Shown here: piece by piece, positions 4,317 through 51,578 of the stretch
Layout of the letters: each line of letters opens with the position of its first letter
How positions within the stretch are numbered: the first letter of the stretch is position 1
Assembly (NCBI GenBank): GCA_965644315.1
Contig: CBFFRQ010000018.1
Location: forward strand, 558,001 to 622,000
DNA length: 64,000 bases
Reading direction: 5' to 3'
Source: Caecitellus pseudoparvulus
Taxonomy: Eukaryota; Protista; Bigyra: Bicosoecida
Made by a program: the position numbers and the translations under genes
The notes under the pieces: generated by a model
Database searches by the model: none
What the model saw: only the letters and a program-made list of their open reading frames with translations
What the model was told of the DNA's origin: nothing

Positions 4317-7300
4317 CTACTCCGTATCGGAAGAGTCACTGCCTCCCTGAGCTGCTGCCAGCATGGCAGCCTGCCTTGCGGAGTGTCCAGTCACAGCCCG
4401 GAGTAACAGGGCCCGGTTCAAGTGGGCAGTTTGGTCCACGACCGTTCCCACGGAGCCCAATGCAGAAACCACATTCACTGGCACGGGAAGCTTCGTGCTC
4501 TGGCGCACGCTTGGCCCGCTGCCCCCGTCAGACGCAGTGGAGTCGCTGTCGTCACTGTTGCTGCTGCCAGCCGCATCTGCACCGGCGGCCTCCGCATAGC
4601 GATCAAGTTGCTGCACAAGTTGGAAGCGGGGCGCACCTTCTGTACCACTGGAACGCACTTGCTGCATCACATAGCGTTTTGTGACTGGAGGTGAAGGTGC
4701 AAAGCCTGCTGCGGGTGGCTTGCTGCCGCCCCGCCCGAAGTCAGGCGAGCGGATGTACTTCTCAGCACTCTCGCTGTCCATGCGCATGCTCCGCAACACC
4801 TCCAGGGTGCCCTTCAGCTCGTCCAAAGATGCCTGTGAGGACACTTCAGCTCCTGAAGACGCTCCTGGCGAGCTTGCACCCTTGGAGTGTACCGAAAAAT
4901 ACGACTTGTGATCAGTTGAGTGTCCGCTGCCGCGTGCAGGCACTTGGCCGGCCAAGGCTTGGCCCTCCCTGATATGCCCATGCCCGACCATATCTGCGTG
5001 ATCTGCGGGAGAGGCTGGATGGGACGCGTCAGGGGACAGGGACATGGAGATTGAGTGCGGCGTGTCAGGGAGGGAGGCGTGCCCCTTCCCAGCACCTCGC
5101 ACAGGAACTGGTGGGGAAACCAGCCCAGACGCGATGCCAGGCAGAGGCAGCTGTCCAGCAGCTCGTGCTGCCGCGGCAGCCTCGGCTGCTTGCCGTGAAG
5201 GCGTGTGCACGTCCAGGGCCAACCCGCTGCCCCCTCCTCGCCGACCCGATTGAGGTGTGTTGGACACTGAGCTCAGGGGCACAGCCACCGACTCCGATCC
5301 GGGCACTGCCAGGCCAAGCTCCTCACGGGCAGGGGAGCCTTGCTCGCTGTCAGAGCTTGCCCGAGGTGGCACATGGGCCACACCACCCTCCACAGTGCCC
5401 TCAGACTCCCCCTCCTCCGAGTCGGCATCTGAGCCCGTACCGCTGTCCGACGCACCCTCGTAACCCAGCCCACCGCAGTCTGAGCTACTGTCACCCCCTG
5501 CCGAAGACGAAGCAAGGTCCAAACTTGAGTCGGCACGGGTGGCCTGGTGCGAGGAGCGTCCCCACACAGCAGCCCAGTGCTGGGCGGCGGGTGCGGCCCT
5601 GGCGACTGCCTCCCACCCCTCCTCCTCTTCCTCGATGTCCTCGTCTGCGCAATCATAAAGTGCCTGCGCGCTGCCACTGCCACGCCGGCGCCGGCGGCCG
5701 TGCTGCAGGGCCTGACGCGACCACCTGGGCACACGCACCTCCTGCCCCACCACCACGCCGCTATCGGCAGCATCGTGACCGACCTCCCCGCCTGCCGCAG
5801 CAGAGTCCCAAGCCGCAACGCTGCCAGTGGCCTGGGAGTCTATATCGTTGTCCCAGCTCCCCACGGACTCGCCGTCGTCAGGCAAGGGTGGCGTGGCGTC
5901 AAAGTCATCCTCATGCGCCTGCCAGTGTCCATCACTCCCTGGCGCATGCAGCACTCGTTCAGTGGGCACGGCGCCTGGGAAGGCGTCAGGCAGCGGAATG
6001 GGGGACTCCTCCCCGCCACCGGCTGCCTCGTCGCCTCCAACTGGAGCGCTCCACGTCCATGAGCCCTCCTCCTCCTCCTCTTCCTCCGCATCTTTCTGTC
6101 TCTCATCGCGCCCCTCCCTCGCGCCAGCTGCCCCAGGGGTGTGGGTCTTAGATTGCAGCTGGCGCCCATGAAAATCCCACCCAGGGCTGTCAGGTTCACT
6201 TGCCTTGGGTGCGTCGGAAGCCCATATGTTCACGGGGGCGGCGGAGGAGGAGGTGGGGGAGGCCGCCACGCCCCCTCGCTGCGTGCTCATGCCTGGAGGT
6301 GCAGGTGGGGGGAAGGCGATGCCGCCGGACGCCGTCACCAGCACAGGGATGGGCAGGCCGCCTCGTCCTTGGGCGTCCAGGCGCGGGGCATGGCGGATGT
6401 ACCGAACTTCCCTTGCAGAGGGGCGGTCCACCGCCAGCCAGTCCCCGCCCTCGCCGTCCTCGACCTCGGAGCCCACGGCGCTGTCTGCTTCGCTAAAGTC
6501 AGTCAGCGGCGTCGCCACAGACTCGCTGTCGGTGGAGACGCGGGAAGAATTGGGAGCGAAGCCCTCTGCGGGCCACTCGGCACCCCCTTCGACCGTTGGG
6601 TCAGACCGGATGGCGTGCTCGTCGATTTCATAATCGTGCACGCCTGCCGCCACGGTGCGGCCCATGGCCACCACAGGGCTGCTGGGGCCACTGGCCAGGG
6701 CGCCGGGTGGCCCGCGAGGCGACTGTGCAGCTGCTCTACCGCCTCGATGGGGTGACGGCCTGGCCCGCATGCCGGCCAGCTGCTGCTTCACGCCCTTGAC
6801 CTTGCTCATGGCCTGCTCCATGTCGGAGGGTGCAGGGCCTGAGACATGCACGCGGACACCGCCCTCGGGCCCCGTGTGCACGCTGCGCTGGGTCCACCCT
6901 GGGCCGGGACTGCCCAGAGGCTGTGCCTCCGCAGGTGCCCCATCCCTGCCTCGCGGGGTGGAGGGGGTGGAGGAAGCATCGCTGCCGTCCACCTGCCACG
7001 GCAGGTCAGCGGGCTCAGGAGAGGGCACCTTGCCAGCCCCTCCCACGCCTCGCCGCTTCACGCCAGACTTGGAGCCGCCCGTTGCCGTCGCACGGCGCTT
7101 GTGCCTGTGCACTGTGGTGGGCTCAGCGGCCGCACGGCGAGAGACGAGTCCCTTGCGGCCCGTGGCACCACGTGGCCGCCGGACCCCGCCCACGTGGGGC
7201 TTGCCTTTCGCTTTGCCCTTGCGCACACTGCCACGCTGGCCGCTGGTGCTGGCTTTGGCTTTGTTGCGCTTGCGGGTGGCACGGCGCACGACAGTGTCGG

Positions 7301-43650: not shown

Positions 43651-46600
43651 ATGGCTCAAGGCCTGCAAGTTCCTCTGTCCGAGGCCTTGCAAGTGATCCA
43701 AGCATTCCTCAAAGGGTGCGGCTATGTGCACGCCATGCGCACCCTGGAGCTTGAGAGCGGAGTGGCAAATGTGCAAGCCTGCGAGGTATGGTCAGCGAAA
43801 CGGCAGCTGAAACTCCAGCGTTTCCTGCTTCCAAACGCGGAGCTACATGATTCCCTATCGCCCAATTGCCGCCCAGAAGCAACTTGATCTCCGAAGTTCT
43901 GCACTTGATGGCGATTTTCCCTCTGTACTTGCTTGGATAAAGGTGCGGGGCGCCTTGGCTGCAATGGGCCGCACTTGGCGCTCAGCCGACTTCCCTGCAC
44001 CACAGGAGGAGCTAGGCGGCGATGGCCAAGCTGCCCTGGACGCCGAGCGGGTGGCTCTGGAGCAGCTCTTTATAGAGATTGTTGCTGGAAGTGTGGGTCT
44101 TGCTCCACGCCTGGCTGGCGTTCCTTGTTCGACAGGCCCTTCTTGCCGATTGCGCAGTTTTCGCCGAGTCTCGGCTCCCCTCGAACTGTGTTGCAAGCAA
44201 CGCTCACGCGCCTCGAAGACCTCTGCGAGCATGACGCTTTCCAGTCCCTCTTGCTACTCCTGGAGTGTGACGATGTCCGACAGCACGCTGACTACTCGTC
44301 GTGGACGCCCCACAAAGGCCGCATGCACATGTACACCCACATCTCCAGTCTGCGCGCAAGCTTGCAAGAGCAAGGACCAACCGCCCCCACGTGCCCTGAT
44401 CATGTTGCTCCTGCCACCATGTTGCTGCGTGCCTTCGCACACGCCGCAGAGGCTCAGGCTGCCGACGTGCCACATGCCGTGTCAGGCCAGGGAGCATTCT
44501 ACTCACCTGTGCGCGACCGCATTTTGCTCCCAGCAGCAGCCTCCTCTGCTGCTGCAGGCCCGCTAGCCCCTGGTGATCCGGCATGGCGCCAAGTTGGCGG
44601 AGCTTCACCTGCCCTCATGAAGGTGAAGCAGAACTGTCCCGCAGTGTCATACGTTGCGGCACTTGCCAAGGCTGCATCCCCAGACACAGCTGCCGCTTCA
44701 AAGACGTCTGACAAGCAAAAGCGAAGCCCTAGAAAGCATCGTAGCCGGCACCGGTCCCGCCACGGGCGATCTCGGAGGTCCCACCGTCGTGGAGGCAGCC
44801 GCCATGGGCACAGACACAGGCGGCGACATCGCAAGCGGCGCAGCTACTCCTCCAGCTCATCAGCTTCTACGGCAGCCTCTGAGAGCTCCCCTCATACCTC
44901 ATCAGCTGAATCTGTGCCTGAGGTGTCTGAGCTGCTCCGTGTGCAGCGCTTGGCCAGTCACGCCAGCGCTTCCCCTGCTAGCGCAGTTGATCGAGAGGGC
45001 CGCACTGCGATTGCGGCTGCATTGCCAATGCCCGAGTCGCCCCCCCAGGCGCCCGAGCAGCAACTTCCTCCCAAGGTCCCCCCGCCGGTTGCATTTGTCG
45101 TGGACACGTCTTCTGGCGCGCCCAGTCACAGCGCCAAGCCTGCAGCCACCACGTCACAGCCACCAGTGCCTGCTGAGCAGCCCAAGCATCTGCCTGTGGC
45201 CTGGGAGATCGATGTGGCGGGCGATGGCGCTGGTTCCAAGGCGCAACTTGCATCAGCTTCTTTCTCTCCCCCTCCCCTGTCCAGCAGGCGGCGGGACCAG
45301 GCAGACGGGGCCCGCCGTCGCGGCGCGCGGCAGCCCAGCACCGGGTCTGGCCGCGCTCCCATGCGAAGGGCACGGTCCAGGGAGGCCACAGCACAGGTGC
45401 AACCTAGGGACTCAGGGACTGCACTCCCTCATGATGATGCCCTTTTGGTCGGGGCTGAGCATTTGGAGGGCTTGCCTCAGGCCGATGCGCAATCTCCCCT
45501 CCACGGTGACTCTGCCCTTGCCGCCGCTGCGTCCCCTCCTGCACCTGCGCCAGAGAACTCCGGCAATGCTGTCGCCGCAGGCTACTCCACATCTCCATCA
45601 GGTGTGGTTGCTGCTCTGGAAGCTGTGCTGATGGACTCACACCTTTCCGACGATGATCAGGGAGCTGACTTGGCTCTCTCTCCGACACCCTCCCCAGCCG
45701 CCGCGGCAGCTGCCGCGACTGCAGAGGGCCACGACACCCCACCACGCTCTGCTTCATCGCCAAGTGCTGCTGCGTCTCCCGACTTCCCGAAGCAGGTGCC
45801 CGATGAGGAGGTGGTACACCCCCAGACTGCCCTACACTCACCATCCACTGCTCCCCCTCAGCATGCAGCCGAGCTGGCGGCGGCGGACATGGTGCAGCCT
45901 GCACCTTTGAGCCCAGAAGGACCTCGAGAGACCATGGCTGAGGCACGATTCAACGCAAAAGCCCCAGACCACCTGTTACCGTGGGCCCCGGAACCCACTG
46001 AGGGCACGCATTGGTTCCCTGCTGACTGCTTGGAAGACCGCCTGCCAGTGCGCACTGCCGCGTTTGATGGAAGTGGGACGTTTCTCGCTGTGGGCACCAA
46101 CAGCAAGTCTCTGCTCATCGCAGCAGTCCCGCCCGAGGTGTGGAACCCTGCCCAGCCAGCGGTTGACGCAGGCTCTGGCGGGCACGTCACCCAAGCCCCA
46201 AGCGCAGTGCCAGCGCCCCTAGCCTTGACGCGGGAGTACTCCCCATTCCATGCTGGGTCCGTCTACTGCACCGCCTGGTCGAACAACTCCGGCAATGATA
46301 GCAGCATTCCTCCAGGCACAAGCAGCACCCCTGCCCTCCTCGCCACCTGCTCCAACGACACCACCATGCACGTGCTCAAGTGGACGTACAGCGAGCCGTG
46401 CCACGTCTTTCAGGAAGGAGATGCCGCTGGTCCCGAGGCAGTCGCTGTGCTGCGCGGCAACAGCGGCACCCTGCGTTCCGTCGCATTTCTGGGCCCCAGC
46501 ACGCTCACATGTGCAGGCGGGCGTGACTTTGCCCTGCGCCTGTGGGATGTGGCATCCCTCACGCGGGAGGCTCCGGGAGACCTGGACACAGACTCACCCA

Positions 46601-47190
46601 CGGCAGTGCTGGCTGGGCACACAGGCAGCGTCTTTGGAATTTCCAGGTACGGCCCTGCGGGGGACGCTGCGATGCTGGCGAGCTGCGCAGACGATGGCAC
46701 CGTTCGGCTGTGGGATGCCCGTGCGGGTGCCTGTGTGGACACCATCACCGTCACGACCATGGGCAGCCCTGGGCGGTCTGTGCGACCTGTAGCAGTGCAC
46801 GGAGTTGCGGTGGACCACGTCGCAAGCCGGGGAGTGGGGGGCAAAGTGCTCGCGGCTGCAGGTGCGGATGGCATCGTGCGCATCATTGACCCTCGCGGCA
46901 CCCGCTCAGCCCGCGTGGCAAGCAGCGCAGCCCTGCACGCGGGCAGCGACTCTCGGACTGTCGCGTTTGCGCCCTGTGGGAACTTGCTTGCTTCTGGCGG
47001 CTTTGATGGCAGCATTGCCGTCAGCAGCACTTTGGGGGGTGTCCTGGAGCCGTTGCAGCAGCTGCCTGCTGCGCACAGGGACAAAGTCCTGTGCGTTGCC
47101 TGGCATCCATGGGCAGCGTCCTTTGTTTCCACGGGCGCTGATTGTGCCACAAAGCTGTGGGTAGGCTATTCCGGAACAGCGGATGCTTGA
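43651..47190 (+). CDS. WDR47: WD repeat protein 47 (LisH-CTLH-WD40; nemitin), ciliary central-pair factor
   Basis: LisH-like ALQVIQAFLKGCGYVHAMRTLELESGV; WD40 blocks LEDRLPVRTAAF..LAVGTNSK, HAGSVYCTAWS, LLATCSND, HRDKVLCVAWHP..FVSTGAD. Confidence 0.9.
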
Positions 47191-47273
47191 CGTGGCAAAT
47201 GCAGCGGGCGGAAATGCCTGTGGCCTGCACAGCGCCCTTCTGACGCCCGCGACACCGTCACTGGAAGTCGGCC

Positions 47274-47622
47274 CACTAGTAATTTACGTCTTCGAACCCT
47301 CCCTGGCGTAGTGAGGAAACCCACAGTAGTGCGCTGAACTTGAGAAAATGATTGACTAGTGTGGGTGCCAGTGCGAGTTTTCACACGGTCGGCTGTGCTA
47401 GTGCCAAGTCTGCGCTAGTGAAGTGCACGGCGTGCATCACTGGGTTGATCTTGCTAGTGTGACCAGGATTTGCCAAAACTGTTCAACACTGATTTCTCTA
47501 GGGGTAGGTTGTGCGCTAGCGCGCTAGACCTTTGCGAAGCGTCGCTAGTGTGAGCGGGGTTGAGAGCTGGTGCAGGGTCAGCTGTACTAGTGCGAGAGCT
47601 GTACTAGTAAGGAGACCTGCCT
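47274..47622. repeat. Degenerate ~80-98 bp tandem repeat (4 units), each with three (C)TAG(TG) sites
   Basis: TAG triplets at 47277/47309/47327, 47357/47399/47416, 47455/47499/47517 and 47546/47588/47605. Segments 47354-47433 and 47543-47622 align ungapped at 50/80 by hand count. Confidence 0.7.
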
Positions 47623-48280
47623 CCAGCTGCTGTTATGGCAACACACCCACACTACTGAGCATGAAGCTGGCGGGGCCGCCGACTCTGTGCACCCTCTCCT
47701 TCGTTATTTCAAGCCATGCACGCTTCCTCTTTGGGCCGTGATGGTGTTAGTGGTCTGGGGGGTGCCCTGCGTCGACTGGCGTTGCGTTTCGCTGCTGGCC
47801 AACGCCTTCACAACGCCTGCCCCAGGGGGGCCGGGCGGGACTCCTACCTCATCCCCGGCACCCAGTATACCCATCATCACCTAGCTTTAGGTACGGCATG
47901 TCCCATTGCCCTGCGATGGTCTTTCAGGAAGGTCTGAGCGAGCGCCGCCCAAAGCAGCGTCTGGCCCAAACAGCTCTGTGACAAGGTGAAACGCCACGTG
48001 CTGAATTTCAGCCTGTGCAGCCGGTGCCGCATGGCAGGAACGGTGCATGCCCCAGATAGCGAACCTACCCTCCCATGGGTCATGGGTGCGTGCTGGGCTT
48101 CGGGCAATGCGGGCGGGTGGCCCCCACTTCTCGCTCCTGCATTTCCTGGCTTTCTCCACATCCCAGCGTTGCACCCACTTCCAGCCCTGAACCTGCCGGC
48201 ATTGCTGCGCACTCACCCCAAACGTTCACCATGTCACTCACATTCCCCATGGGGGACCTCCACAGCGAGGAGGGAGCCCA

Positions 48281-50349
48281 ATGGCAAGGGCCGAATTCAC
48301 TGGTGCAGGCGCTCATCTCTGCGATGCTGCCCGCCTGCTCAACTGCAGCAAGGCCGCCAGCGCTGTGATGACTCGGAAGCGTCCACTAAGTGTGGTACCT
48401 TCGTCTTCCAGAGCTATCAGCCGTGCTGCCGCCGTCGTTGAGACGCCTTTGATCCTACAAGGTGACGATGGTGCGGGCAGCTTCCCGCTGCGTGTGTGAC
48501 GCTCACGCCTCCACCCACCTTTCCCCCTGAAATCGTCTGCAGCCGAGACGGCCACTTTCACATCTTTATGTAACAAAGATCTCGTTGGCGCAGCTGCTAT
48601 TGGTAGTATCGCCGCTAAAGCTGCCCGTCCTTGCCTGTCAAACGGCTGCTGATGCCACAGCGATCGACGAGTTGCGTTGCAGAAGGCTAACGCCAACGCC
48701 AACGCCAACGCCAACCCAGAAGCCCTCATGGCAGAGGCGATGGCCGACTGCAGGCCTGTCAAGGCACCCAAGCCGCTTGATGTCGCAGAGGAAGTTGTTT
48801 CGCTGCTGGAGATGGCCACGTTTTCGGGTACTCCTCTCCAACAAGCGATTGTCAAGGCGATGCGCAGCATGTTTGTGTGCTCTGCAACCGACAGGCCCTA
48901 CCTCCACCGCGCAGCTGGTATGGGACAGGCGAGGATGTCCCATTTGGAGGACGCAGTGTCTCCAGCGGCGAAGGCGCAGGAGACGAAGACCTCCAAGAAG
49001 CATGCTGCGCATGCCAGAGACCACCTTGCTGCTATCCTGGAGAAGGAGACCGACGCCGACCCAGTTCCATGGGCCCCAAAGTTCAGGGCAGAAGCCCTCC
49101 GCATCGGAGTCGGCCTGATTCATAAAATCCCCAACTTCATCTTCGCTGACGCCAAAGTCTTGGTCGACACCCTGTAGGCAGCAATCAACACTGTCGCCTC
49201 CGAGCAGGTTCCTCCCCTCCAGGTGGTTGAAGACTTGGAGGAAGACGGGGAACAGCCAGATGCACATGACTCGAACCCTGCTCAGCATGACACCAACTTC
49301 TCTTCGCCATGGCAGAGTATGTGCCTCGAAAGTGTGCGAGCAGGAGCGAACAAGGCCTCTCTGCAAGAGGAGATGGCCGAGCAGGGTAGTGTGCTTCGTG
49401 CTCTGGAGGACATGGTGTCGGTCAGCAAGCATGCAAAATATGCAGGTCTCGCAAAGACACTGAAGAGTGCCAGCAACAAGTGCCGCGCGAAGATCACGAG
49501 GTGAGTGGACGGAAGGTGCCTGTCGTGCCTGCGCAGCACAGGATGGTGCACTCCTGGAGCTCTGTTCAGTGTGGAGTGCCTGGGAAGTTTTGGGGCGTGG
49601 AACGAGATGAAGAGGAAGTACAATCCTGTTCAAGAGAAGTGCACTGGAGGGGCGGCTGGTCGGTCTGACCACAGCATGACCCTGTTCGAGGTGTCATCCG
49701 AGGATCCCGAATACCGCCACAGCTGGGTGCCCAAGGTGTGTATGGGTATGCCTGTAGACCGGCTGGGGCGAAGCTGTGTCCAGTTGCTGCTTCTCCACCA
49801 TAGTTCTTCGTGCCGCAGGTCAGGGGCAAAAGAAGGACATCCGACCGCTTCAGTCAGCGTGCATCCGTGCTGGAGGTGGACGTTTGCCGCTCTCGCATCA
49901 TTGGAGACGACTCCATCAAGGCTGTCTTCGAGTGCCCACCCATCGGAGGATCGGGTGCCGCCTGCACACGGTACGGCCCCAGCCTCGATTGATTGGAAGA
50001 GGCCCTTCGCGGCCCGGAAGTTGTCGCCACAGGGGCTCGTGCTGTCTTGGGGTGGATGGAGGCTGTGTACAAAGTCGCTGTCAACTGCTTGAACATCAAG
50101 AACAAGCAATGGGTGGTTGGTTGTGGGGACCTGGGCGTCCTCACCCCCGCCGACAAGAAGCGTGCGTCCTGCATGTTGGCCATGGTGTGGACGTCCCTCC
50201 GCATGAAGCACCATGTACACACGGAGCTGGTCGGGCTCTCTCGTCGCCTCGTGTCCGCTTTGGGCTGTTGCTCTTTGGCTTGGTATTGGTGCCGGAGCAT
50301 TGAAGCTGAAGTGCTTGTGGTCATTGAACGGCTTTACAGGTGTTGTTGA
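48281..50349 (+). pseudogene. Spliced orphan gene (~614 codons) with three in-frame stops
   Basis: Consensus introns 48471-48542, 49501-49569 and 49736-49818 keep the phase and join the ORF pieces into one frame. Stops are TGA 48650, TAG 49175 and TGA 49990. Confidence 0.6.
48689..48715 (+). repeat. (AACGCC)4.5 microsatellite encoding a poly-(Asn-Ala) tract
   Basis: aacgcc x4 + aac, read directly. Confidence 0.9.
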
Positions 50350-50379
50350 ATGCATGTGGGTCACGGCAGGCTGGCCCTA

Positions 50380-50580
50380 CTTTACTAGTAAAGGATGTGC
50401 TACTAGGAGGAAGTGCTGCTTGCGGGAGCGCTAGTAGTGCCCAGGGCAGCTGCGCGCACTAGTAGCGCTCCCAGCACGCGGAAATTCACTAGTGCGAGGC
50501 TCCGCCACCACCTCTCACTAGTGCAGGCCTGGAGATGCATTCTCACTAGGAGCGCAGAACCTCCTCTCAAAAATACTAAT
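50380..50580. repeat. ~29-bp-period array of (C/T)ACTAG motifs with a 14-bp palindrome and a 17-bp hairpin
   Basis: CTAG at 50403, 50431, 50459, 50489, 50518, 50546 and CTAA at 50576 (spacings 28,28,30,29,28,30). Palindrome CTTTACTAGTAAAG at 50380-50393. Stem 50424-50440/50456-50472 with one mismatch. Confidence 0.75.
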
Positions 50581-50898
50581 ATGACCTTTGAACTCTGGTG
50601 AAAAAGCACGCGTCAAAACTCTGCTAGCGGAGCGCTGTCAGGTGACGGCATCCTGGTGCTCGGGGCTAGACGATAGGATGTGAGGCTCAGCCGATCCATC
50701 GCTCTTGCTAGTTGAAATCTACTTTCCGATCCCCGTGGGCATCGTAGCCTAGCTTCATGCCCCAATTTCTGTGCATCGTTGGCCTCTGGCCAACCCAAAC
50801 TCCTCAACACTGAAAACTACTTCACACCAACGCACTCTGAATCAAACGCGAAGGCTCCCTGACTGGCCTGAACATTGAAAGCTTGAGTGCAGTTCGCC

Positions 50899-51578
50899 AT
50901 GCTGGCCAGAGCGGCTCGCGTGTTGCGCCGCTGCCAACTTGGCGCACATGCTCCGAGACGAAGCAAGGCCAGTCTGTCACAGGTGCGTGCGCTCGTCGTG
51001 TTTCCAGGCTGGCACGAGGAATAAGCAAAGCACGGCTTTCGCATGTGTGATGAACGTCTGGTGCATTCGTGCGTCTGTGCAGGTGCTTGGTCAGCCAGCT
51101 TGGAGTTTGCGGAAGTTGGAGAGCCCAGTAGAGCACTCCGAGGCAGTCAGCGAGGAGGAGGTGAGCGCCTCTGATGCAGCCTGCACCGAGGTAGCACCCT
51201 GAACGCTCGATTTTGTTCTTGCAGTTGGATCACCTCCTGCGACTGTCCTTGTTGAGCGGCGCGAAGCTCAGTGCAGCCGAGCGTGCTGGCCTGAAGCAGG
51301 ACTTGGCAGCCATCTTGGCATTCGCCCGAATGGTCCAAGCAGAGGCGCACAGGCTAGGCGATGAACCACGAGAAGCCCTTTGGCAAGGTGACCTGCCTCT
51401 TTCTCTCAGTGCTTCTGACTGCCTCCCAGACCCCGACAAGCTGCCAGATGAGGCCAGTACCCTGCACACGCTGAGAGACGACACCATTGAAGGAGTGCTG
51501 CCGAGGGACAGCTTGCTGGAAAGTGCCCCCCAGTCTGAGCACGGCTTTTTCAGCGTTCCCAAGACCATGCAGCGCTGA
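50899..51578 (+). CDS. GATC: Glutamyl-tRNA(Gln) amidotransferase subunit C, mitochondrial (3 exons)
   Basis: Presequence MLARAARVLRRC, PAWSL, LDHLLRLSLL, LKQDLAAILAFARMVQ, TLRDD...LLESAPQSEHGFFSVPK. Confidence 0.85.

Follow-up and report, generated by a model that had tools for sequence, protein, structure and literature searches.

What occupies the 3.7-kb gap between two host genes, WDR47 (stop codon at 47188-47190) and GATC (ATG at 50899), in a 64-kb stretch of eukaryotic DNA (GC content ~62%) from the marine protist Caecitellus pseudoparvulus? This stretch (contig CBFFRQ010000018.1, positions 558,001 to 622,000) is referred to as the window, and all bare coordinates are positions within it. 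The original prediction, made from the letters of the window, read the gap as an unclassified mobile element in which an orphan gene is bracketed by two inverted arrays of CTAG motifs. Our analysis indicates that positions 47255-50648 very probably are a non-autonomous cut-and-paste DNA transposon of a Plavaka-like lineage, an internal-deletion derivative of a larger element. The orphan gene is the second, spliced gene of this transposon family; it is neither a transposase gene nor a host gene, and it has decayed in the window copy.

The block is a repeated element with exact ends

We searched the window's own 30.6-Mb assembly at the DNA level and recovered six further copies of the block on other contigs, with 95-99.8% identity, together with a distant family of ~68% identity (the long family, below). 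The seven copies have common boundaries, each starting at the base that matches 47255 and ending at 50648, and their flanks are unrelated to one another. These boundaries define a 3,394-bp element on the plus strand (47255-50648), which we call the short family. Alignment of the copy ends showed that it is bounded by the terminal inverted repeats CCGTCAC (47255-47261, plus strand) and GTGACGG (50642-50648, plus strand), which are imperfect past 7 bp and are the same in all short and long copies save one mutated copy. Directly outside them lie the left (47253-47254) and right (50649-50650) copies of a 2-bp target-site duplication, CA, identified by flank comparison and by the empty-site joint described below. 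Among the six insertions with both flanks, the flanking dinucleotides matched in five (CA/CA in the window copy, and CG/CG, CA/CA, AT/AT and CG/CG elsewhere), and no preference for a target dinucleotide was seen across all flanks compared. The insertion point lies 63 bp past the stop codon of WDR47 and ~250 bp ahead of the ATG of GATC. The window copy and the copy on contig C69 differ at just 0.18% of positions, indicating a recent insertion. The predicted extent, 47274-50752, was right in that the block is mobile and wrong in its limits: the true element reaches 19 bp further left, the CACTAG at 47274 being the first array site inside the true end, and stops 104 bp shorter on the right, where the last three CTAGs belong to the host flank.

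Four short and several long copies lie at contig ends, where the assembly was broken at repeats, and on this ground the copies might be taken for segmental duplications or an assembly artefact. The unrelated flanks and the base-precise boundaries with terminal inverted repeats speak against such an origin, and public runs independently show both the filled and the empty form; its probability is negligible, the target duplications and the empty-site contigs having already refuted it. The contig ends that coincide with element copies are those of C17, C24, C65 and C69 for short copies and C15, C63, C27, C200, C51 and C36 for long copies, and four short copies break off 10-18 bp short of the element's right end. 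Since many copies stop exactly at contig ends, the assembly was broken at this repeat family and all copy numbers are lower bounds. An association with telomeres, prompted by the copies at contig ends, was dropped because copies with both flanks lie in ordinary DNA and the contig breaks fall at repeat boundaries.

The insertion site is empty in public sequencing runs

Contigs from public runs were compared with window positions 46500-51500. The results showed that contigs from three runs, X1 (labelled organism A), X12 (labelled organism C) and X5 (a marine metagenome), join 47252 directly to 50649, which is exactly the empty form of the WDR47-GATC site. Missing at the joint are 3,396 bases, the length of the element (3,394 bp) and a single 2-bp duplicate, and 2 letters fit both sides. 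The empty-site contig of X12 measured 3,814 nt, with flanks ~98.5% identical to the window, and that of X5 measured 1,755 nt. Element-family sequence was present in all three runs at several times the depth of the flanks; together with the joining of 47252 to 50649, this means that the family is present there and the site is empty. In run X1, which may come from the very sample that was assembled, the empty form had a depth of 24.7 compared to ~50-60 for the flanking contigs, about half, which is consistent with a heterozygous or polymorphic insertion, contig depths being unable to prove heterozygosity. These results show that the element inserted recently, duplicating CA, and that a sister strain and wild populations still have the site unoccupied. 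The proposal of an inserted element is upheld by its multiple copies, sharp shared ends, short terminal inverted repeats, 2-bp duplications and exact empty site in three runs; the block is not single-copy, and it is absent from this site in relatives, unlike what might be expected of ordinary host DNA.

To the right of the element, three CTAGs (50666, 50708 and 50749) stand ~41-42 bp apart within 84 bp of host flank (post-hoc Poisson P ~1e-4). The DNA at 50666-50749 is single-copy and present in the empty-site contigs, and so lies outside the element; the trio may have arisen by chance, may belong to the promoter of the gene that follows, or may hint at a preference for certain targets.

The short family derives from a two-gene autonomous element

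The short element is without a transposase gene, and its termini and arrays are those of two transposase-encoding relatives in the same genome. The first, on contig C44, is a single-copy element of 11,880 bp whose ends are 87-91% identical to those of the short family and in which both the transposase frame, of 1,133 codons, and the accessory gene are intact. The second is the sister, or long, family, with ~12 copies of 6,847-6,851 bp that are 99.9-100% identical to each other and 68% identical to the short family, and that share their first 11 and last 10 bases with the short element. Three long copies have a large minus-strand frame open over 1,129 codons and also an intact ORF-b (open reading frame b, the longer frame of the accessory gene); the divergently transcribed gene of this family is the homologue of the orphan gene in the window.

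Compared with a C44-like element, the short family lacks ~8.7 kb, comprising a nested element and the whole transposase gene, and has in its place a 219-bp filler (47878-48096) whose matches in the genome fall only in the seven short copies, with no match to the C44 or long elements. With the transposase gene deleted and the ends kept, the short element is a deletion derivative that needs mobilisation in trans. These results show that it derives from a two-gene autonomous Plavaka-like element by internal deletion, with termini, arrays and accessory gene kept, and the existence of transposase-encoding relatives with the same termini and arrays agrees with the non-autonomous derivative that the original prediction had offered as one possibility. 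A 2-kb miniature derivative of the long family lies elsewhere on the window's own contig.

Several further features of the relatives were recorded. Nested PIF/Harbinger-type transposons (DDE_Tnp_4; one also with a SAP domain) of ~5 kb and ~4.4 kb occur in two family members, the C44 element (L029/L019, G000:C44:140497-152380), where the insertion lies in non-coding DNA, and L016 (G000:C19, long-element position 5049); the element position of the C19 nested insertion is also where contigs C51 and C36 end, exactly there or no more than ~10 bp away. In the long copy L015 (G000:C49:146500-156000), the first ~19 bp of the left end, near locus position 1260, are missing and an 18-bp copy of right-flank DNA stands instead, which points to an aberrant insertion or repair event. 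Between L012 of the long family and L019 of C44, synonymous divergence was 0.36 in the transposase gene and 0.75-1.0 in the accessory gene, with ends just 68% identical; judged from these sequence comparisons, the elements look mosaic, the transposase module having apparently been exchanged between lineages more recently than the rest. Eight long copies differ across the 2.1-kb accessory region only by a run of 5 versus 6 G, and those with 5 G have a broken ORF-b (L011, L013, L017 and L018 compared to L012, L014 and L015). Differences in G runs also break the transposase frame of L011, and they may be homopolymer assembly errors instead of real mutations.

The autonomous relatives encode a Plavaka-like transposase

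The 1,087-aa transposase of the autonomous elements (within open frames of 1,129-1,133 codons) bears a C2H2 finger at its N-terminus. The genome contains at least six other families of this transposase superfamily, at 22-30% identity, each with a 1,100-1,240-aa frame and a divergent second ORF. Alignment of the seven in-genome proteins revealed invariant D391, D526 (in a D-x2-E-x-W context), a CxC motif, D607-x2-H610, YPKxH and DTDxGE801, the last two forming a PKxH...DTDxGE block, and H777-x3-H781 precedes the catalytic glutamate in five of the seven families. The triad D391, D526 and E801 was still invariant in a 14-sequence core alignment that included fungal Plavaka proteins. In the further families (L021-L028, on G000 contigs C147, C68, C30, C149, C43, C111, C169 and C190), the second ORF is intronless, divergently oriented and 450-580 aa long; these ORFs form two groups that are barely related (hhalign probability 77%) and have no detectable relation to ORF-b.

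Pfam searches with pieces of the transposase returned nothing above threshold, the sole partial matches being an N-terminal C2H2 finger and, in two of the more distant in-genome families, sub-threshold Plavaka, and a word-based protein search with a 553-aa piece gave no match. An exhaustive profile search over 1.84 billion representative proteins yielded just 22 matches at E <=0.001, of which the distant full-length ones carry the Pfam Plavaka domain (46-255 bits), including proteins of the fungi Ciborinia camelliae and Sporobolomyces johnsonii. Comparison of the seven in-genome proteins with five Plavaka-bearing proteins by hhalign gave a probability of 99.7% and an E value of 1.2e-25 over 539 columns, with all motifs aligned, and direct BLASTP of the core against P0011 and P0014 gave E values of 2e-10 and 7e-9 (small database). 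A feature search of the ESM Atlas suggested Plavaka at 0.89, a weak lead that was later borne out. In an unrooted tree, the in-genome families and two metagenomic proteins fell on one side of a branch with 92/92 support, apart from all five Pfam-Plavaka proteins.

The 501-residue core was modelled with AlphaFold (pLDDT 70, pTM 0.71). When this model was searched with Foldseek, RAG1, amphioxus RAG-like and Transib chains made up nearly all of the first ~40 matches (E from 3e-3), and VIA-align gave Z 12.2 over 311-353 residues for RAG1/Transib, compared to Z 11.3 for P-element transposase and <=7 for unrelated chains. A sequence profile search of solved structures returned weak zinc-finger matches only, with no RAG1 or Transib among them. 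The C2H2 finger itself (L012:5263-5325, minus strand) has an ALGGH motif, and its best match among solved structures was the plant SUPERMAN finger of the QALGGH type (E 0.034), a weak resemblance.

The homology, the predicted fold and a 2-bp duplication within the 2-5 bp reported for the clade place the element as Plavaka-like in the CACTA/Mirage/Chapaev/Transib (CMCT) clade; placement in PlavakaA or PlavakaB is not claimed. It is highly improbable that the element belongs to another superfamily, such as hAT, PIF/Harbinger, Mutator, Helitron or canonical CACTA/En-Spm. Subterminal arrays are known in hAT, Mutator and En/Spm, the fold also matches the P element, and Harbinger transposases are present in the genome, nested inside two family members. 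However, a 2-bp duplication misfits hAT (8 bp), Mutator (9-10 bp), Harbinger (3 bp) and canonical CACTA (3 bp, with CACTA ends), Plavaka is the sole Pfam family linked via homologues, the top structural matches are RAG1 and Transib, and the Harbinger genes (DDE_Tnp_4) sit only in separate nested insertions that are missing from other copies. The label of an unclassified or undescribed family can be replaced by that of a Plavaka-like element, and what survives of it is that the lineage is possibly separate.

The orphan gene is a decayed, spliced accessory gene

The transcribed region of the accessory gene, or gene 2, covers 48176-50366 on the plus strand, as delimited by a spliced 1,998-nt metatranscriptome contig from a family member (run X19, record 16). 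Its four exons (48176-48470, 48543-49500, 49570-49735 and 49819-50366, plus strand) are separated by introns of 72, 69 and 83 nt, all GT..AG. The first frame, ORF-a (48231-48652, plus strand), occupies exon 1 and the start of exon 2 and ends at the TGA at 48650-48652, which is its natural end and not a premature stop. ORF-a has 118-158 codons, and the layout of ORF-a followed by ORF-b recurs in the long family. In the window copy, 4 bp are missing after 48270, which shifts the frame of ORF-a; these 4 bp are kept in copy L007 and in the RNA contig.

ORF-b (48740-50349, plus strand) spans three exons from a conserved ATG at 48740 and encodes the accessory protein, 459 aa in intact long-family copies. 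It is intact in L012, L014 and L015, and all three of its exon frames are open in C44. In the window copy, ORF-b is a pseudogene, interrupted early by a TAG at 49175-49177 and a TGA at 49990-49992, each a C-to-T change when compared with other copies. None of the seven short copies has an ORF-b free of premature stops, and four copies have the same TAG at codon 156, indicating that this defect was carried through transposition. The ratio of nonsynonymous to synonymous substitution rates (dN/dS) between the long and C44 lineages was 0.16-0.49 for ORF-b, which indicates purifying selection in intact copies and hence a real protein; the value for ORF-a exon 1, 0.58, was ambiguous.

Searches for relatives of the accessory protein were negative: Pfam returned nothing above threshold for the exons taken separately, a word-based protein search with ORF-b exon 2b found no relative, and hhalign detected no similarity between the ORF-b exons and the second ORFs of the genome's other transposase families. 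Leads from the ESM Atlas for ORF-b pointed to generic helical-repeat families and were rejected as weak and not credible, and modelling ORF-b exon 2b with AlphaFold from an alignment of 2 sequences gave a pLDDT of 39 and an unusable structure. The original observation that the internal protein shows no transposase motifs is explained by its being the product of an accessory gene, a pseudogene in this copy.

The survival of the whole accessory gene through the deletion, and the purifying selection on ORF-b between lineages, could also mean that the short element acts as a helper-only satellite. Its ORF-b product would then be functional and required, for instance to bind the arrays, and the stops would be errors of the assembly or very recent lesions. 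An RNA run contained a spliced transcript from a short-family-like copy that lacks the 49175 stop, and the stops differ by sub-lineage, so that the founder copy may have been intact. We nevertheless consider this improbable, given the premature ORF-b stops in all seven assembled copies, the codon 156 TAG shared by four of them and the additional 4-bp deletion in exon 1 of the window copy. A deletion derivative carrying a decayed accessory gene remains the preferred interpretation.

The two ends carry differently built arrays of CTAG sites

Recounting reproduced the gap coordinates and the motif counts of the original prediction, with 11 CTAGs at 47276-47604 and 11 at 50385-50749, TAGTG occurring 8 times at the left and CACTAG 4 times at the right. 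The remark that CTAG is sparse elsewhere also proved correct: the tetramer is depleted generally in the window (67 seen compared to 216 expected from base composition), occurs at 0.78 per kb outside the element, and 19 of the 67 fall inside the element's two arrays. Against this background, the left array had a Poisson probability of 2e-14, and the 8 sites of the right array that fall inside the element had one of 7e-11.

The left subterminal array (47276-47607, plus strand) holds 11 CTAG cores with the approximate consensus CTGTRCTAGTGYGA, arranged in three ~90-100-bp units with spacings of 42-44 and 17-18 bp; counted from the left end, the sites lie at 22, 71, 101, 143, 160, 200, 244, 262, 291, 334 and 352, and their positions are conserved relative to the sister family. 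The right subterminal array (50385-50627, minus strand) holds 8 CTAG cores, mostly 28-30 bp apart, of which three (50489-50546) read CTAGTGA on the minus strand, and in the cross-family alignment the right-hand sites form a ladder with a 28-29-bp step. The three-unit pattern on the left and the 28-30-bp steps on the right indicate that the two ends are built differently.

When the ends of the short, C44, long and miniature elements were aligned, the CTAG sites stood at the same positions and the spacers diverged. Between the short and long families, identity in the left array was 86% in site columns compared to 58% in spacer columns (P = 4e-7), and in the right array 77% compared to 63% (P = 0.04). 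A metagenome contig with P0002 belonged to a different, L021-like family without CCGTCAC ends or CTAG arrays and thus provided no extra footprinting. Across the genome, all 87 matches to three CTAGTG motifs with 10-40-bp gaps fell in this family's ends, and in every copy the triplets of the left end occupied the plus strand of the element and those of the right end its minus strand. The proposed opposite orientation of the arrays accordingly holds for the CTAGTG triplets nearest the termini, which are inverted in every copy; it does not extend to most right-hand sites, which a position-weight score could not orient, the core motif ACTAGT being palindromic.

The position of the block between two host genes, and the three additional CTAGs in the single-copy host flank at 50666-50749, would also suit arrays that are host regulatory or structural DNA around an ordinary lineage-specific host gene, with nothing mobile involved. 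This explanation has practically no standing: seven copies have identical sharp ends at unrelated sites with 2-bp duplications, the exact empty site is found in three runs, and CTAGTG clusters, which might have been expected in ordinary intergenic DNA, occur nowhere in the genome outside the family, so that it is already refuted. Within the transposon, the phased CTAGTG/ACTAGT sites are best regarded as putative docking sites for an element-encoded protein, by analogy with established systems such as En/Spm, in which sites of this conserved, phased and end-specific kind serve that purpose.

Counter-evidence and a proposed mechanism

Several points weigh against a Plavaka-like, trans-mobilised transposon. 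The Pfam Plavaka profile (PF18759) gave only sub-threshold matches, on two of the seven in-genome families (E 0.005-0.008; best 16.5 bits compared to the cut-off of 26.3), and none on the long and C44 proteins. Of the cysteines after the second aspartate, C544-x-C546 alone is invariant, and no proteins but those of the long family and C44 have a C-x2-C. The termini read CC...GG, not the CA...TG or TGT...ACA reported for the clade, and the Plavaka-bearing comparison proteins were retrieved with this family's own profile, which introduces a mild circularity. The spliced RNA contig came from a marine metatranscriptome and represents a family member ~92% identical to the window copy, not that copy itself. 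The depth figures of the runs do not prove heterozygosity, and the candidates for the protein that reads the arrays are named purely by inference. Finally, one of the six insertions with both flanks, L006, has non-matching flanking dinucleotides, its own termini being mutated. In this copy (G000:C94:119766-123157), both terminal repeats are altered by T-to-C and A-to-G changes (CCGCCAC...GGCGGCGG) and the flanks are TG/GC; the copy is probably immobile now.

On the evidence as a whole, the short element would be mobilised in trans by the C2H2-finger DDE transposase of the C44 element, of the 6.85-kb family, or of both, a proposal we infer from its relatives, which have identical terminal bases and array sites in conserved positions and which encode DDE transposases that are intact. 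The phased CTAGTG/ACTAGT sites may recruit an element-encoded protein, either through the N-terminal zinc finger of the transposase or in the form of the ORF-b product, and the array-bound protein would then pair the two ends for cleavage at the terminal repeats. Cleavage and integration would rely on the RNase H-like DDE chemistry of the RAG1/Transib-related clade. With integration, 2 bp of the target are duplicated, CA at this site.

A more far-reaching version, which we regard as possible but doubtful, holds that the family is a separate CMCT lineage of marine stramenopile-like protists, outside PlavakaA and PlavakaB and with its own CC...GG ends, in which the fast-evolving orphan ORF-b protein, translated after a long upstream ORF, would take the place of the transposase in reading the near-palindromic arrays and would be a functional analogue of TnpA of En/Spm derived from unrelated sequence. 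Were this true, it would explain why the deletion derivative has kept the accessory gene.

Implications

These results delimit in full a recently active DNA transposon system in a marine protist, comprising an autonomous element, a sister family, a deletion derivative and a 2-kb miniature, with a natural insertion polymorphism visible in public metagenomes. No new kind of genetic system is involved; the element is of a known kind, possibly in a separate lineage. Starting from the window, the analysis added the short non-autonomous family and its origin, the empty site for this insertion, the spliced transcript, the exclusivity of CTAGTG clusters and the footprint statistics. A poorly characterised Plavaka-like branch, a distant relative of RAG1 and Transib, is thereby extended past fungi and red algae, and the clean set of conserved candidate binding sites makes end recognition directly testable. 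For annotation, the orphan gene should be treated as a decayed transposon passenger, not as a host gene; for the host, the insertion lies in the likely promoter region of the downstream gene, in some strains only.

Comparison with known systems

In the En/Spm (CACTA) system of maize, TnpA binds subterminal 12-bp motifs and TnpD acts at the termini, and dSpm/I elements are deletion derivatives. The present family appears analogous in having an autonomous element with two products, subterminal repeat arrays that are unlike in number and spacing at the two ends, and deletion derivatives that would be mobilised in trans. It differs in its duplication of 2 bp instead of 3, in having two divergently transcribed genes where En/Spm relies on alternative splicing of one transcript, and in the lack of detectable similarity of ORF-b to TnpA or any other known family. 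None of the three hallmarks of canonical CACTA/En-Spm elements (CACTA termini, a 3-bp duplication and a Transposase_21/TnpD-type Pfam match) was found in the element.

Plavaka has been grouped with EnSpm, Mirage, Chapaev and Transib/RAG1 in the CMCT clade, whose target duplications measure 2-5 bp, with 2-bp duplications reported for PlavakaA and some PlavakaB (PMC12730594). The termini of the clade are 5'-CA...TG-3' 'in most cases', with TGT...ACA in PlavakaA and CATCA...TGATG in PlavakaB, both groups of fungi, and giant Plavaka elements with accessory genes have been described in red algae (bioRxiv 10.1101/2025.02.11.637652). The present family resembles Plavaka in its DDE transposase of ~1,000-1,300 aa with an N-terminal C2H2 finger, which the fungal match P0013 has too, and in profile homology (E 1e-25) over the whole catalytic region, the H(3)H motif seen in five of the seven families, the 2-bp duplication and accessory genes alongside the transposase. 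It departs from Plavaka in that all seven in-genome families miss the Pfam threshold, the termini are CCGTCAC...GTGACGG, CxC alone is conserved at the place of the expected C(2)C, and the accessory gene is an orphan and not a TET/JBP or PAG gene.

Compared with Transib and RAG1 (structures 6pqx, 6oet and 6dbo), sequence identity is 8-10%, the Transib duplication is 5 bp, and no RAG2-like partner is present here. The modelled core nevertheless superposes with Z ~12 and is predicted to share the RNase H-like domain, the helical insertion and the catalytic-glutamate region, and this superposition fits the grouping of Plavaka with Transib and RAG1 in the literature.

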